From: Paramoeba atlantica
Taxonomy: Eukaryota > Protista > Discosea
Length of the DNA stretch: 64,000 nucleotides
Reading direction: 5' to 3'
Assembly: GCA_977017575.1 (NCBI GenBank)
Contig: CDRNVI010000044.1
Location: 434,001 to 498,000 of the forward strand
The number at the start of each line of letters is the position of its first letter. The first letter of the stretch is position 1. A model generated the notes under the pieces. That model made no database searches and was not told where the DNA came from. It worked only from the letters and a program-made list of their open reading frames with translations. Below are positions 9,328 to 17,599 of the stretch, in pieces. A program made the translations under genes and the position numbers.

Positions 9328-10020
9328 AGGGGGGGTATAGTATTTGAATGGTGCGTCATATTGTGTGTAGTGAAACAGTTGCGGGTGTGAATGGGGTGGA
9401 TTTTGTGGAACGCACTTTAAAGAATGTATCAAAACAGAATGATACAGATATTGTGTTGTTTATTCATGCACTTAGAGTGAAGAGATTTGCCCTACTCAGA
9501 GTGCAGACATTGTCCACTTAGAGTGCAGACATTCCTTACCCGCATACGACGGGTGGATCACGTGAGGATTTGCCCTCGCTGGAGGAAAATGGGTGCAGAC
9601 AGCTGACTTCCGAGGTGCAGAGAGCTCGGTTGCCTTGTGCAGAGCCGGATGCGTAATCCCCATATTACAGTTTCGGGGGTTCAAAAACTGTCTCAACAAA
9701 AGCCTTTTTGGGAGGCATTGAAAAATGATGAAATCCGAAATAAGTTTGTTTCAAAAGTAAAGGAATCATTAAAATCTGTGCCAAAAAGAATTCGGTCGGA
9801 GGATCAGAAGTCCGAAAACGCGCCAAAAATGGAAATAGATAAGGCCAGCGAAATATCTTGGACAAGACTCTCTTCTGCTTTTAGAGTGTCCGCATCTAGT
9901 CTGCCCAAGAAAACTAGTAACGCAAAAGAAATTCGCATTGATGCTGAAACATATCTATCCGGATTTGACATGAAGTCTCTGCTGAAGATCGTGGGCAATA
10001 AAACTATGTTTGCACTCGAC

Positions 10021-10351
10021 GTTGGCACTCGACGCCTTGCGGCCCGAGCACGGGTACCCAACCGTAGCTACCAGGACGGGCGTCCACCCCGTTGCATCGT
10101 GTAGGCTGTGTCTCAAGCCTCCTTTGCGTAGGCAGCTCGCAATTTAGCGGCTGCGCTGGAGCCTGGTTCAGCTCGACGGTTCCGGGTCGGTCCTCCAGGG
10201 GAGCGGGGTTGGGTGTGGGCCTTGAAGGCACTCCTGATCGCTTTCCCTTTGTAGTGAGGCCGCCAGGTTGCGAGTTTTGTCGATAGCGGGAATCGAACCA
10301 ACAACCTGCAGGTTGTAAGGCCCACCGTCTACCAACTACGCTCGCACCGCC
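10021..10351 (-). mobile_element. tRNA-headed SINE-like element inserted antisense in LINE copy B
   Basis: 5' tRNA-like head with A and B boxes; the 3' about 120 nt is shared with 16388-16513; it interrupts LINE homology between ...NKTMFALD and ...VKNHF. Confidence 0.7.
10278..10351 (-). promoter_or_regulatory. Degenerate tRNA-derived Pol III internal promoter (SINE head)
   Basis: GGCGGTG...TAGTTGGTAG (A box)...CTTACAA...GGTTCGATTCC (B box)...TATCGAC; acceptor stem 6/7 pairs, anticodon and T stems imperfect. Confidence 0.7.
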
Positions 10352-13300
10352 CAACACAGGTAAACAGCAGCCTTAATATAGTGAAGAATCATTTCAGCAT
10401 GGTAGGGGGTAGTGTTTACAAAGGTCATGAAGCAATAAGTTTACCTACTGCACCAAAACGGTTGGCAAAAATTGATGATGGTGAATTTCGAGTGGAGGAA
10501 CTAACTGCTGCGATGGTAGAGATTAAGTCAGGAAAAGCTAAAGGCGATGATAATATCCCGGTTGAAGCTTTACGTGCTATTTCAGCTGATCAAGACTTGC
10601 GGAATGCTCTCCTGGATATAATGAACGAAGTGCGAAAAACCGGAAAAGCGGATGAATCTTTGAAATCGATATTGCAGGTCCCATTGCCAAAGAAAGGTAA
10701 CTTGCGCTCACTCACAAATTGGAGACCAATCTGTCTTTTGAATCATGTAGTGAAGATTTTGAATCGAATCATTTTAGACAGAATACAACCAGCAGTGGAA
10801 AGTTCGCTTCGCGGGAATCAATTCGGCTTTCGACCTAACCGCTCAACAGCTGGCGCTCAGGCAATGTTTTTAGAAATAATGGAAAAATCACGCCGAGGGG
10901 CTGGGGTGTTCGTCTGTTCCGTCGACTTTCAACAAGCCTTTCCTTCATTATCATTCGCTGCGATAAAAGAGACATTACGTGCTTTCGATATTCCCGAAAA
11001 TCTCAGTTCTACGATCATGTGTATTTATCAAAATCTCAAATCGCACGTGAAAACACCATACGGTAATACAGACTCATTTCCACTTTTACAGGGGACTCTT
11101 CAAGGTGACGTTCTGGCCCCATACCTGTTTATTATGGTTCTTGATCGTATTTTAGTTGAATCTATCGACATAAATCACTTAGGGCTTGCGACACATAGCT
11201 CAGGAACTAGGAGCAGAGGCCTTAAGGAACTGCGTGTTAAGGAACTGCGTGATATAAATTCTGCTAATGATATAGTTCTCTTCTCCGAATCCAAGGAGGA
11301 GCTAAGCACAATGTTGCACAAACTTAAAACTTCTGCAGAAAAAGCTAATTTGAAAATAAATGTCGGACCAAACAAAACGGCATGGATGACACTAGGCAAA
11401 GTTAAGGATGATGGAAGACCTCTGCAAATCAAAACTTAAGCGACACTCGGCGATATACCAAAAGTTACATCTTATCGCTACTTGGGTAGCACTCAGAACG
11501 AGGAGGATCGCAGCTCAAACTCACAAGAACGTGTACGATTAGGTTTGGCAATAATGCACAATCTCAAAGCCATATGGAGTTCTACTATGTCACCAAAAAG
11601 CAAATTACACATCTTTAAGTCTCTCGTTCAATCAGTGGTCTATTATAATCCAGGGACTTGGAATTTAAATCAGAAAGAGCTACATGAAGTGGAAGTCCAA
11701 ATGAACAGAATGAGGAGGGTCGTATTGGGAGTCAAGTGCTCGAAAGAGGCGCATTGCGGAGTAGACTCCCACTGACCTAAATCCCAATACTGTGATACAA
11801 TTACAACGTTCCTCGCTAGTAGGCCACCTTATTCGTCACCCTACTCCATTCGTAACTGCCGTACTATGGAGAACGAATGATGAGAGTTCCAAGCCCTCGC
11901 TATCAGAAAAATGTGCAAAAGAGTTACATTCTGACGTATCTGAGATTCTAAAACTTGGTCAAAATCGGTCTCAATGGTGCAAGAAACTTGAAAATCTTCA
12001 AAATCAACTTGAACCCAGGCCCTCGCACACTAAAACAACTTCAAAACTATGGGAAAATCTTTTTGTAAAGGGGGTAAACAAGGGGTGCTACGAAACCCTA
12101 CAATACATTGAAGAAGGGCGGCAACCATTTCCAATCGGGCCAAATGAAACACACATTTATACAGATGGAGCACGAATTGTTAAAAAGGATGAAACTCACA
12201 CAGGTTGTGGGCCGCGAGCCCTCCATGTCTATTGGGTTAAAACCTCCCCATGAATTCTCTCAATCTATTCAGGAAATAGAATCCTTTGCCGCGCACGAGG
12301 CTCTTCTCATCGCATTGTCCTACGACGGAGATGTCATTTTGCACACGGACTCTGAGTATGTTTGGGATTTCTTTCATGGAGCTGGTTCAGATTCATAGGA
12401 TTTAAATCGTTTGAGGGAGGCGCTATACTTCAGAAATTGCAAGAAACATATGTTTCGCTAAGAGGGACACAGCGTTTCTACTGCGTAAAAGTTAAAGCGC
12501 ATAACGAAAATCCACATAATTATATGGCAGACTGGGTGGCTAAACAAGCAAGTAAAATAAGCAAGGGAGAAAAGGCTTTGAGATTCTACGGCGAGATTCC
12601 TCATGCAGAAGACAAGCGCAAAAACCATACCAATGGTGATTCTAATGGCAGCAAAATGCAGCGCAAACTTAAATTGGTAACCTCTAGCCAAATATGCACC
12701 CATGGTGAGCACGTAAAAATATTGCCAAAAAGTAGGACAGTTAGCAAAGGCAAACGTGCAGAGATAGAAACGGAAACGAAACGCACAAGATCACAAGAAC
12801 GCGTACAGTCCAACAACACAAAAAGGCTAAAGGACATTGAGTCAAAGCAACAGTTGCCTCATGTAGCACGTATTGTTATTAGTGATCGGGTTAAATTTAG
12901 AGCTCCGCAAAGAAAGAGGAGTAATCAGTTATACCAGGAGAATGATGAGCCAAGCTATGAAAGTCTGGGCACAAAGGGGTCACGTCAAAAAACACTCAGT
13001 AAAAGAGAGAACTGCGTCAAAAAGACAGAAAACCGTCAGGGGAAAGACGATAGATCGCGCACTAAGAACGTATTACGAACACCAAAGAAATGATACCCCC
13101 CTCATACCCCCCTTTATCGCATTTTCTGAACAGGTGAGTGATAGTTTGATAAGGTGATATGCTGTTGTTTCTCGTGAAAATATTTTATTAGGTAAACCGT
13201 TTGTGCTGAAAATGAAAAGTCGATTTCATATCACAATTATTTGACTAAGTACTGGAACGTCATCCACCTCGAATGATTAGGATACATGGAAGTTGTTGCA

Positions 13301-13422
13301 AGATGTTTTTGAAAAGCTTCTGGTGAATATGTTAGTTTTGTGGACACCGCCAAAGTGTTTTATGGGTAGGAGAAATTTGTGAAGCTTTCAACTGGTACAT
13401 ATTAATTTATTATCCCAGTGAT

Positions 13423-13808
13423 GGTTGGTTGGTTGGTTGCTTTCGGGGGCAATCCGGGTGCAGAGAGCTGCGACAGAGCCGAGGTGCGGAGAGCTTGGCG
13501 ACCGTCAGGTGCGGAGAGCCGTAAACGCGGGCAGCGAGGGACACGTCTAGTGGTCCTCAAGGGAGGCCACCGTGACGCCTATCCCTCTCGGAGAGGTAAG
13601 GGTCGCGAGGAAAGAAGCCGAGAGAGGGAAGCACTCACTCCAGGGGAGTGCGTCGGGGAGGGGTGAAGGGATGAAGGAGCGCCCTCTGCTTCAGCGATCA
13701 AGAGGGACAGTTCCAGCCTTAGCGCCGGCCGGCAACGGGCATGAAAATACAGTAAGAGTATGCCCGTTGCCGGGGAAAGAGAGGATGAACAACAAGGTAC
13801 AGAAACTG
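13423..13808 (-). mobile_element. SL-capped short structured retroposon ending in (AACC)4
   Basis: Starts with CAGTTTCTGTACCTTGTTG (13808-13790); perfect 14-bp hairpin CCGGCAACGGGCAT/ATGCCCGTTGCCGG; three GCTCTC(C/T)GCACC repeats; microsatellite tail at 13423-13438. Confidence 0.65.
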
Positions 13809-13810
13809 AT

Positions 13811-14510
13811 GGTGTTGCTAATCCCTGGACAGTATGCTGCCCAGGGGCACAGCAACTCCCCATTATCTCGGCGTAGTAAACATTCTAAACAATCGTTAAC
13901 ATTCTTTATCGTTAACATTCTAAACAATAGGTCATAAAGATTTCGAATAACGGATCACAAATGTCACAAACAATCTGTCATAAGGCTGCGAACATCATAA
14001 AGATCTAAAATCCTGCATCTTAAAGAAAACTTCTAATATTAGCCGTGTGTTTTTTTTTCTTTTCTATCAACGCGACCCGCGTAATACATCCAATAATGCG
14101 GCGTTAGCAATATATTTACAACCTACAACTTACTCGCTTACTCGTCCCCCACGGCGGGATGTAATTTACCAACCATTTTTTTTTCTTTTTTGCAAAAGCG
14201 ACCAGGGCGAGATCTTGCTTCCCCTCACGGGACTTTACATCTTCTCGGGGAGGCCCCCAACACAAATTCTTTCAACAGATCCAAATCATTCGTGCGTACT
14301 TCGCACCGGATCTTCCGACTTCTGTTCAGCCTGCTCCTTCTCGTGCCACGAGATGCGCGAGAGCTGGGCATTTGCCTAGAGCGGCATGATCACGTTTTTT
14401 TTTCTCTCGGCGATTACAGTTCCAGGCAAGCCAAGGCGTGTTTACTACGCCGAGATAATGGGGAGTTGCTGTGTCCCTGGGCAGCATACTGTCCAGAGAT
14501 TAGCAACACC
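13811..14510. repeat. 72-bp inverted repeat pair (13811-13882 and 14439-14510), each a nested hairpin
   Basis: 70/72 identical; the right copy extends to a GATAATGGGG/CCCCATTATC stem (14454-14519). Confidence 0.85.
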
Positions 14511-15089
14511 CCCATTATCACAGACTTCATAAGCATCTTGGAACCGGGACCAAGCCCAGTACGCCTGGCAAGCCATGGCACCGAATAGCTCTTCTTTTTT
14601 CTCCTTTCTTCTTCTTATCTCTCAAAAGCGGGACCACATGCTTGCTCACATCGTTCGAAGATCAGTTTCGGACGTCATATCCCGAGTCACCTACCGTTCG
14701 TAAAGCACACTAACATTCACAAAGACCACCGCTACTAAAAGCTCTAAACTGCGGTACGTTTGACGGCGCGCTGGATCAAACAGCGAGGCGATCACATTTT
14801 GAAAAGTAGACTTCCTTATTTCTATACCCTCTTTTCTTCACTTTTTCAAAAGTAACAATTCGAAACAAAAGCTTCTTTTTCTCTCTCTGACAATCGTAGG
14901 AAATGTTCACACATTTCCAGAGCACCTTCATCCTACAAACATCAGTCAAGCTATGGATGGTGCCACCAATCCTCCTCTTCTTCCGTCACCTCAAAAAGGA
15001 CTTGAAACAATACATTAAAAAACAACATCAAATCGGATCTGAATCTCCGATACTCCGGTCGAAATCTCCTCATCACGCAGACAAAGTAC

Positions 15090-15515
15090 AAACCTCACTA
15101 CACCAATTGTAGCGGAAACAGAGCCATAAAAGGCCTAAAAGATCATAAAATCCGGAACGCAAAACAAGTCCAAAGGACCTCACTACACCAATTGTAGTGG
15201 AAATAGAGCCATAAAAGGAATCGGATCATAAAATCCGGAACGCAAAACAAGTCCAAAGGACCTCACTACACCAATTGTAGTGGAAATGGAGCCATAAAAG
15301 GCATCGGATCATAAAATCCGGAACACAAAACAAGTCCAAAGGACCTCACTACACCAATTGTAGTGGAAATGGAACCATAAACGGCCTCGGATCATAAAAT
15401 CCGGAACACTAAACAAGTCCAAAGGACCTCTCACTACAAGTGTAGTGGAAACAGAGCCATAAAGGGCCTCGGATCATAAAATCCGGAACGCGAAGCAAGT
15501 CTCAAAGACCTCACC
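15090..15515. repeat. Tandem repeat, about 83-bp unit, about 5 copies
   Basis: CCTCAC starts at 15093, 15178, 15261, 15344, 15427 and 15509; internal hairpins CACTACA/TGTAGTG and CGGAT/ATCCG. Confidence 0.95.
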
Positions 15516-15961
15516 ACACGACGGAACGGTTCACCGAGGAACGGCCTTTATACCAGGACCAAACCCAGTGACAGGCATGCCCATTGGCACCGCAGATCAA
15601 CTCCCTCCTCCCGTTCTTGTCATCATTCTAGGTTTTGAAACGTAAAACAAAACTCTAAGGGGTGTGTAATGTGTTAAGCATCTTTTATTAGATACGTCAC
15701 ACAGATGCGTAGCCGTAAAGGCATTGCATTAGAAATCCGCGAAAAAAAAGGAGTGCAAAACTGACCCGCCTGCGCGAGTCGTATAAGGTGCGTCACACAG
15801 ACAATTTCATTTTTTCTATCCACTTCGTTTCCTTTACTTCCAGTACACTGGAAAACAACACAAACAGCAGTGGTACAGTGTGATGATCAGCAGTCTTTGC
15901 CTACAATAATCATTAAATTTACGACTACAAGAAATCTACCCTTAATGATGATTCTAAGTGA

Positions 15962-16215
15962 TGTGCCAACAGTCAGTCCCGATGGATCTCGAGGCAAAGT
16001 ATAACCACCAACCGTCAGTTCCGAAGAACCTCGAGGTGAAGTGCCAACCGTCAGTCCCGAAGGACCTCGAGGCAAAGTGAACCACCAACCGTCAGTCCCG
16101 AAGGACCTCGAGGCAAAGTATAACCACCAACCGTCAGTTCCGAAGAACATCGAAGTGAAGTGCCAACCTTCAGCCCCGAAGGACCTCAAGGTAAAGTATA
16201 ATAATAATAATAATA
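15962..16215 (+). repeat. Tandem array of 36-42-bp units (6 copies) ending in (TAA)6
   Basis: CCAACCGTCAGTCCCGAAGGACCTCGAGGCAAAGT units of 42, 36, 41, 42 and 36 bp. Confidence 0.9.
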
Positions 16216-16387
16216 ATCGTCGTAGTCACAAAGGTCCTCGGGGTAGTGCATTTTGGCGCGGAACGGTATGTTTTCCCCCATCAGGGCTAAAACGAACCGG
16301 AATAAAATCACGAATGTGGTGCCAGGCTCGTTCCCACATGGAATGTCAACATGTAAATAAAATATGTATATCCTATCTTTGGATCGG

Positions 16388-16640
16388 AACCTAAATTTCG
16401 TGCTGCTTACGCAAAGGAGGCTTGAGACACAGCCTACACGATGCAACGGGGTTGGATCCCGTCATGTTAGCTACGGGATGTAGCCGTGCTCGGGTCGCAA
16501 GGCGTCGAGTACCTTCTGGGAAGGGGTGGCCTGAGACTGTACCCTAACGGTTGGCTCCGTGTTTTCTGTCTTCTTCTTCTTCTTCTTGAGCACGACACGC
16601 TTCAAACATTGTCCTCTTCTTCTTCTTCTTCAAACATTGA
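16388..16640 (+). mobile_element. 3' end (ORF C-terminus + 3'UTR + (CTT)n tail) of a non-LTR element, shared with the SINE
   Basis: KFRAAYAKEA-TGA followed by conserved hairpins; two (CTT)n tracts at about 16568-16630. Confidence 0.6.
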
Positions 16641-16830: not shown

Positions 16831-17599
16831 CTCGGTGCCAGCCGCTTAACCCATAACCAGTGTACATTTTAGGGTTCTCTAGCCCTGTTTTTTGCCATCA
16901 TTTCCCGGTAAACCGCGTGGCCTGGTACGCTTATGAGTTCCTTTCTCTCAAAACCGGGGAACTGACAAGCAGGGGCGTGAAATAAATTTATGAACGGGTC
17001 TCCCCAGTTGGAACTCTTTATATCCAGCGACCTGCAACGGAGCACCCTTGGGTAGAAAAAGCCAAACCTGGGTCCAAAACATCTGACACGGAAACCAAAA
17101 ACCAAGACGAAAACTGTTTGACCACGAGCGAAACCTCATAGATCGATGCTGCTCCCATAATTACAACAACAAAAACAAAGACACTGATATTTGAATATCA
17201 GTTAAAGGGTCTGTAATTTACACCATAAAATAGAACCCACCTACGTACAAGCTCACTTGGCATTTACGCGTAGAAGCATCTTCTACGACCATGAAATACA
17301 TACTTCCTCATTACTTTCTTTGGTAAATAACCCGTTAGGTGCGAATGCGGCTTCCGGCGCTTTGCTCTCATAACCATTTGACTTCCTTATCTGTTGGCTC
17401 TATATTCCTGTTTTTGCCTAGGGCAAAGAGCGATAAAGGTTAATAAATCCAAACCTTATTGACAAAATCAATATCCTATCTCTCTTCTTCATAAAACGTA
17501 TATTAATACTAATGGCATAGTGTATTTAACGACTTCCCTTAGCATGGTTTTGCTTTCCTCATTTGCTCAATGAGATCTCCTTGTAGATTTTTGCATCTT

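Follow-up and report, generated by a model that had tools for sequence, protein, structure and literature searches.

A probable young SINE family with a tRNA-like head and a (TTC)n tail in a genome tentatively placed among kinetoplastids

What kind of element occupies positions 10,021 to 10,351 of the window, the 64,000-nucleotide stretch of DNA analysed here, and does it belong to a family or is it a chance neighbourhood of unrelated pieces? A preliminary description, made from the letters of the window, took it for a tRNA-derived SINE with a LINE-derived 3' end: a tRNA-like head with A and B boxes, a unique core, and a tail shared with 16388-16513 that would be the end of a LINE reading frame plus its 3'UTR. 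Part of that reading stands and part has to be replaced. We consider it very probable that the element is a real, young, non-coding SINE that depends on a LINE, with 10024-10351 as a damaged copy and 16391-16587 as an older copy that is truncated at its 5' end.

The genome searched was the window's own assembly (45.7 Mb in 248 contigs), and it contains 202 candidate places for the element. All 40 of the places that were scored show 96-100% identity over nt 1 or 2 to 328. A 28-nt motif from the head has 159 matches and a 28-nt motif from the tail has 115, each with up to three mismatches and each spread over dozens of contigs, while the reversed patterns of both motifs, which served as controls, have 0 matches in the genome. 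Given the identity of all scored places and the empty controls, these family matches are not due to chance. A full copy consists of a body of 409-410 nt followed by (TTC)n, the length of which ranges from 6 to more than 170 nt. In 29 other loci that were examined the flanking sequences diverge exactly upstream of GCGGTG, leaving sharp 5' ends, and all 29 copies finish with ...CTCCGTG followed by (TCT/TTC)n, about 82 nt beyond the point where the window copy stops. A decisive point in the preliminary description was whether any other copies join the head to the 3' part. The genome search answers it, as the two are linked in every one of the 29 loci, and this linkage, together with the sharp 5' ends, the target duplications and the (TTC)n tails of variable length, bears out the claim of a genuine retroposon family.

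The 29 copies diverge from their consensus by 1.5-3.9%, an estimate that leans young, as these copies were picked by their similarity to the query. The element is short, non-coding, dispersed and present in many copies, and tblastx detected no coding similarity between the SINE and about 330 kb of LINE-rich sequence. The RNA fold of the whole element is no more stable than that of shuffled sequence (z = -0.92), and a scan of JGI metagenomes with the SINE head returned no match.

How much of a tRNA is preserved in the head? In the window copy, which starts at 10350/10351 on the minus strand with GCGGTGCG, the head lies at the high-coordinate end and covers 10278..10350, that is element nt 1-73, as read directly from the sequence. 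On the same strand the B box, GGTTCGATTCC, is perfect and occupies 10289-10299, and an A-box-like sequence, GAGCGTAGTTGG, at 10332-10343 departs from the A box at T8. The preliminary description had thus been correct in proposing a tRNA-like head with both boxes. Read directly, the head consensus fits the canonical tRNA numbering from 1 to 73 without gaps, and 17 of the 18 invariant or semi-invariant positions are present, T8 being the one that has changed. The D loop has A14, R15, G18, G19 and A21 in place, and the anticodon loop consists of seven bases, CUUACAA, with Y32, U33 and R37. The T arm is intact: Y48 is followed by a T stem with all five pairs (G49-G53/C61-C65), and T54, T55, C56, R57, A58 and Y60 are all found. 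The D loop and the T loop are separated by 28 nt, the same spacing as in a genuine tRNA-Thr of this assembly. Two stems are broken, with 2 of 7 pairs in the acceptor stem and about 2 of 5 in the anticodon stem. On this base-by-base evidence the first 73 nt are shown to be a decayed class-I tRNA, and the element carries a tRNA-derived 5' head with internal A and B boxes that begins at its very first nucleotide. In the canonical register the anticodon would be UAC (Val), an assignment in which we place low confidence.

Because the acceptor and anticodon stems are broken, tRNA detectors miss the head. ARAGORN reports 0 tRNA genes in the window, and the Rfam tRNA model is absent, both at the gathering threshold and at E ≤ 10, from the window copy as well as from a full-length copy near the family consensus (L015). 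With no tRNA call from either program, the caveat raised at the outset, that the head might be a functional tRNA sitting by chance beside the other parts, does not apply. At a relaxed threshold of 80%, ARAGORN does fold the window copy into a cloverleaf that covers precisely its first 74 nt (10351 down to 10278), but the anticodon loop is abnormal; the relaxed calls on other copies are mutually inconsistent and their anticodons differ. The head is accordingly neither recognised by standard detectors nor traced to a named parent tRNA.

The search for a parent extended over the whole assembly. A genome search with RF00005 recovered mostly tRNAs on contigs C137 and above and one kinetoplastid-style cluster (L047), and the best alignments of the head to the recovered tRNAs are generic matches of the D and T arms that point to no parent. 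Similarly, when the D and T loops of the head were searched as a pattern, no parent tRNA came back, only tRNA-Thr(CGT) on contigs C143, C149 and C185 and one site on C29. This latter site (G000:C29:485561-485610, minus strand) combines a tRNA-type D loop with a B box at canonical spacing, is neither the SINE nor an obvious tRNA, and could be another tRNA-like element. The tRNA genes of the assembly deserve a remark of their own. Contigs C137-C185 (L031-L060) carry many identical tRNA genes (Lys, Ser, Asp, Ile, Thr and others), on one strand and spaced by 10-50 kb. Unlike this arrangement, the cluster on C53 (L047) is compact and holds nine tRNAs on mixed strands. It is possible that the contigs C137-C185 belong to a second organism in the assembly, such as prey.

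RNA polymerase III would start at the first base of the element, directed by the A and B boxes inside it. Inspection of the body consensus by eye shows no run of four or more T in the sense direction, which is weakly compatible with read-through by this polymerase. The alternative that survives best, which we nevertheless regard as unlikely, is a short retroposon that is not driven by Pol III. Its resemblance to a tRNA would be residual or coincidental, and its RNA would either be trimmed from polycistronic Pol II read-through or use the head as a processing signal only. Kinetoplastid genomes are known for polycistronic transcription (PMC7859406), and the window contains two spliced-leader remnants, at 13797 and 24004, both of which lend this alternative some weight, as do the failure of the tRNA detectors and the 2-8 extra bases found before nt 1 in some copies. 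Against it, none of the 29 copies begins with a spliced leader, and their 5' ends coincide with position +1 of the tRNA. In addition, the two boxes stand at canonical spacing, the B box flawless and the A box almost so, and the lack of T runs in the body speaks against this alternative as well.

The wider setting of the window gives some indications about the host. From 19 to 63 kb all long ORFs lie on one strand, which fits polycistronic gene clusters. The two spliced-leader remnants end in ...GATACAGTTTCTGTACCTTGTTG, close to the spliced-leader motif TTACAGTTTCTGTACTT described for prokinetoplastids (PMC7859406). Exact look-up of four proteins from the window returned no match. An ENA assembly contains a protein 99% identical to a MAP kinase of the window, and the best named relatives of this kinase are those of EukProt PhM_4 (62%), Perkinsela sp. 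(58%) and PhF_6 (51%). According to the prokinetoplastid genome paper, PhM-4 (Papus ankaliazontas) and PhF-6 (Apiculatamorpha spiralis) are free-living prokinetoplastids. On this single MAP kinase gene we tentatively place the genome in a kinetoplastid near Prokinetoplastina.

Where does the element in the window begin and end? The copy at 10024..10351, on the minus strand, comprises nt 1-328 of the body and is 98% identical to full copies across nt 1-328. The end at 10021 that had been proposed for the element is not its true end: past nt 328 the sequence goes on in 29 of 29 other loci, each of which is longer and closes with (TTC)n. The window copy has neither the final ~82 nt of the body nor a (TTC)n tail, and the target-site duplication on its 3' side is missing too.

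This loss can be followed in the surrounding LINE, a member of family F1 on the plus strand. Its upstream part, 9637..10013, has a frame that in intact copies runs uninterrupted into the RT frame, and its downstream part, defined by Pfam and by comparison with intact copies, runs from 10352 to 13440. The downstream part includes the RT at 10381-11439 (Pfam RVT_1, E = 1.8e-26), an RNase H region at 12362-13093 (RNase_H, E = 9e-4, below the Pfam cutoff) and, as seen in comparison with intact copies, a terminal hairpin with a (TTGG)n tail behind it, at about 13421-13440. The (GGTT)n run at 13421-13440 is this tail, and so the LINE's own. An intact copy of the host LINE (L081, on contig C42) aligns with the window up to 10013 and resumes at 10359; the 159 nt that it has between the equivalents of these two positions are absent from the window. 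In between, the window holds a filler of 10 nt, SINE nt 1-328, and CAACACA, which matches CAACTAC in the LINE. The filler (10014..10023), a near-duplicate of neighbouring SINE sequence at the junction with the host LINE, marks a secondary deletion.

The simplest history that we infer from this anatomy has two steps. The SINE would have inserted in antisense into the coding region of the RT/RNase H LINE, just upstream of the RT domain, and a later deletion, accompanied by a short templated duplication, would have cost the SINE its nt 329-410, its tail and its 3' target duplication, and the LINE ~152 nt. The deletion is apparent from the comparison with the intact host LINE. This particular copy is broken and contributes nothing beyond the family.

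Can the second occurrence in the window be understood in the same way? The preliminary description had noticed that the 3' part recurs near 16388-16513, and this is confirmed: a repeat search in the window pairs 10062-10147 with 16391-16476 (86 nt, 90% complementary), and BLAST with a full-length copy extends the match to 16587 by aligning element nt 205-436 with 16391-16587. The copy lies at 16391..16587 on the plus strand and corresponds to body nt ~207-410, from which two private internal deletions have removed parts. Over the first 136 nt it shows 89-91% identity to SINE copies, and it finishes with a (TCT)6 tail of its own at 16569-16587. One of its deletion junctions, searched as a pattern, occurs nowhere else in the genome. 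On the upstream side it abuts an unrelated repeat, element X (14087..16391, plus strand), which is not a LINE ORF, and nine other copies of X run on past the equivalent of 16391 with different sequence. Since the junction is unique and X continues differently elsewhere, the copy is an old, privately decayed, 5'-truncated SINE. Element X is itself a non-coding repeat of at least 2.3 kb, with internal tandem repeats of 83 nt and 119 nt, and the genome has it in at least 12 copies that are 82-98% identical.

Here the preliminary description departs from the present picture. It saw in the shared tail the end of a partner LINE's ORF together with the 3'UTR, and in 16388-16513 a copy of this LINE's 3' end. 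The copy at 16391 does come without the head and core of the SINE, as this would require, yet we find the idea very improbable. 5'-truncated SINE copies are common in the genome, with truncation points at nt 80, 155, 226, 315 and 330, and the boundary between core and tail at about nt 205 is merely the 5' truncation point of the second copy. The segment 16388-16513 is not contiguous with an upstream LINE ORF or 3'UTR: what lies upstream is the unrelated repeat X, and the ORF at 16041-16394 has no Pfam match and no RT domain. A separate family of LINE tails to which the copy at 16391 might belong was also considered and rejected on account of the same unique junction and unrelated upstream repeat.

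The coding argument for a LINE end had been that the two copies differ mainly at third codon positions. Three differences indeed share one codon phase of a frame that ends in TGA. However, one of these three is private to the window copy, which has GCC where the family consensus has GCT, and another (TTG to TTT) is non-synonymous, replacing Leu by Phe. Moreover, there are only 11 codons before the TGA, and differences are no rarer in these 'coding' 33 nt than downstream. Followed backwards, the frame meets no stop for 72 codons and reaches into the tRNA-like head, as the high G+C content of the sequence would lead one to expect, and the tblastx comparison mentioned above finds no LINE coding match. 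The shared tail is better described as part of the SINE, with a second copy that has lost its 5' portion and ends in its own (TCT)6.

If the tail is not a LINE reading frame, might the very 3' end of the SINE nevertheless be borrowed from a LINE? The LINE population of the genome is large and diverse, with 810 RT candidates, many of which have open frames of 1,300-2,800 codons. The 3' ends were read for eight families, a sample that does not extend to several RT families of the 47-53% identity classes. The terminal repeat is (TTGG)n in the host LINE F1 (L082 and window 13365-13440), in F2 (L096) and in F3 (L097), (TTG)n in F5 (L098), TCTTTG(TTG)n in F7 (L101 and, on the minus strand of the window, ~17165-17230) and (ATAGG)n in F8 (L083), while F4 (L100) ends in TCTTTG followed by TG/TTG repeats and F6 (L099) in poly(A). 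The 3' module of F1, F2, F3, F4, F5 and F7 consists of a pyrimidine-rich motif (mostly YTTAAC), a small hairpin, GTG and a family-specific microsatellite. The end of F8 has the motif and the hairpin without GTG, and at the poly(A) end of F6 the hairpin module was not seen. In the SINE the corresponding order is CCCTAAC, a hairpin closed by ACGG/CCGT, a G and (TCT)n. Its end is therefore alike in design to the modules of the resident LINEs but has its own stem and its own repeat.

No partner emerges from direct comparison. Blastn of the SINE against the 3' regions of the eight families finds no similarity, and pattern searches for a LINE hairpin followed by (TTC)n return only variants of the SINE, with no (TTC)n-tailed LINE among the eight families. 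Comparing the coordinates of the tail motif with those of RT and RNase H matches did not yield a partner LINE either. One candidate, a tail ~2.5 kb downstream of an RT on contig C30, was discarded, as it proved to be a 5'-truncated SINE beside an inverted duplication. Of the original proposal of a SINE with a LINE-derived 3' end, the SINE stands, whereas a partner LINE was not found among the eight families, with which the SINE shares the hairpin-plus-microsatellite design only. By this design, a LINE-derived 3' end of the SINE is plausible.

The copies themselves bear clear traces of how they have spread. Target-site duplications of 6-13 bp are specific to their sites and plain in many loci, for example 13 bp in L012, 11 bp in L014, 10-12 bp in L030, 9 bp in L019 and 8-9 bp in L015. 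Twelve tail matches without a listed head nearby are all SINE, five of them full-length or nearly so and seven truncated at the 5' end. One of these truncated copies, L085:617-775 (C14:143334-143492), has a 5' inversion like those attributed to twin priming: its first 15 nt are the reverse complement of an adjacent SINE segment, and it is flanked by an 11-bp target duplication, ATTGGATTAGC. Target duplications, a 3' repeat of variable length and 5' truncations are thus all present, as expected of LINE-mediated retroposition, and with the inversion they are the marks of LINE-type target-primed reverse transcription. Often the target sites follow directly on bases of the TTC, CTT or TCC type, and these bases blend into the tail. 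This suggests a mechanism in which the reverse transcriptase and endonuclease of a resident LINE would recognise the terminal hairpin and repeat, nick TTC-like targets, let the nicked strand pair with the (UUC)n tail for priming, and copy the SINE RNA into DNA.

That the copies are instead a satellite-like segmental duplication, dispersed or in tandem but not mobile, is hardly credible even though 10 of the 29 loci share flanks with another locus and the head motif is regularly spaced on several contigs, because the target-site duplications are unique, the flanks are of 19 different kinds, the tails vary in length over the range given above and the 5' truncations are graded. Counted by flanks, the 29 loci represent 19 distinct insertion sites, and the remaining loci are segmental or tandem duplicates. 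As many copies lie in such duplications, a part of the copy number does not stem from retroposition. The regular spacing of the head motif amounts to 3.4-6.5 kb on C61, C71, C10, C12 and C87 and to ~1-2 kb on C40. The standard tail motif is present on C40 and absent among the matches listed for the other five contigs. Either SINE copies sit inside tandemly duplicated units there, or a second family has the head in common.

How does this family compare with known systems? It resembles the tRNA-derived SINEs with a 'stringent' LINE-type 3' end in having a tRNA-like head with A and B boxes at the very 5' end, a unique body, and a terminal stem-loop with a short tandem repeat instead of poly(A). 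Target-site duplications and 5'-truncated copies are further points of likeness, and dependence on a LINE, inferred here, would be another. PMC2323293 gives as such 'stringent' pairs the tortoise Pol III/SINE with CR1 and the eel UnaSINE1 with UnaL2. Unlike in these pairs, no LINE with a common tail sequence was found here among the eight families sampled, the host is of kinetoplastid type and the head is too decayed for its parent tRNA to be named.

Within kinetoplastids the nearest comparison is with RIME, NARTc and SIDER, which are also short and non-coding and are mobilised by resident non-LTR retrotransposons. The preliminary description had rightly set these apart as LINE deletion derivatives (PMC2323293, PMC12278014). 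Bringaud et al. describe RIME and NARTc as deletion derivatives of ingi and L1Tc and contrast them with tRNA-, 5S- and 7SL-related SINEs (PMC2323293). In contrast to these ingi/L1Tc derivatives, whose parent LINEs are poly(A)-tailed (PMC2323293, PMC12278014), the SINE described here has a tRNA-like head and a (TTC)n tail. Nor do both of its ends appear to be taken from an autonomous LINE, as would be the case for such a derivative, a class with a conserved 77-79-nt 5' signature: neither blastn nor tblastx finds similarity between the SINE and the sampled LINE sequence.

A 2025 survey of 57 trypanosomatids found four retrotransposon clades, with non-autonomous elements that are only ingi-derived (PMC12278014), and the same four clades are known from Bodo saltans (PMC12278014; also PMC4728078). 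The prokinetoplastid genome paper does not mention transposable elements. We found no report of a tRNA-derived SINE in kinetoplastids in the full-text collection searched, which mostly excludes subscription journals. We lean towards regarding the element as the first tRNA-derived SINE family of Pol III type to be described from Kinetoplastea, from a lineage near the prokinetoplastids, and moved by a LINE that would recognise the terminal hairpin and (TTC)n. The element is a SINE of a familiar kind in a group from which none had been described. If this is true, kinetoplastid LINEs support classic SINE parasitism besides their own deletion derivatives, and a young SINE with a tRNA head and target duplications would bring the classic SINE design into a deep protist group. 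It would also offer a handle on internal Pol III promoters and on the recognition of LINE 3' ends in these genomes. For specialists this is useful and not startling, as this kind of element is familiar across eukaryotes.

Several smaller observations were made along the way. At 16612-16629 the window contains an 18-nt run, TCC(TCT)5, which is flanked by a direct repeat of 10-11 bp, (T)TCAAACATTG. By its arrangement this region (16601-16639) looks like the retroposition of a (TTC)n tail alone, with extreme 5' truncation. A SINE truncated at the 5' end at nt 226 is flanked, at L083:2270-2651 and in L088, by ~75 nt of host sequence in a perfect inverted duplication, an arrangement that occurs twice on C30 (C30:605270-605650 and C30:582400-582731). 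Finally, just upstream of the SINE head at L002:1461-1500 and, in reverse complement, in L010, a unit of 17 nt is present twice in tandem, and this unit resembles the first 17 nt of the head.
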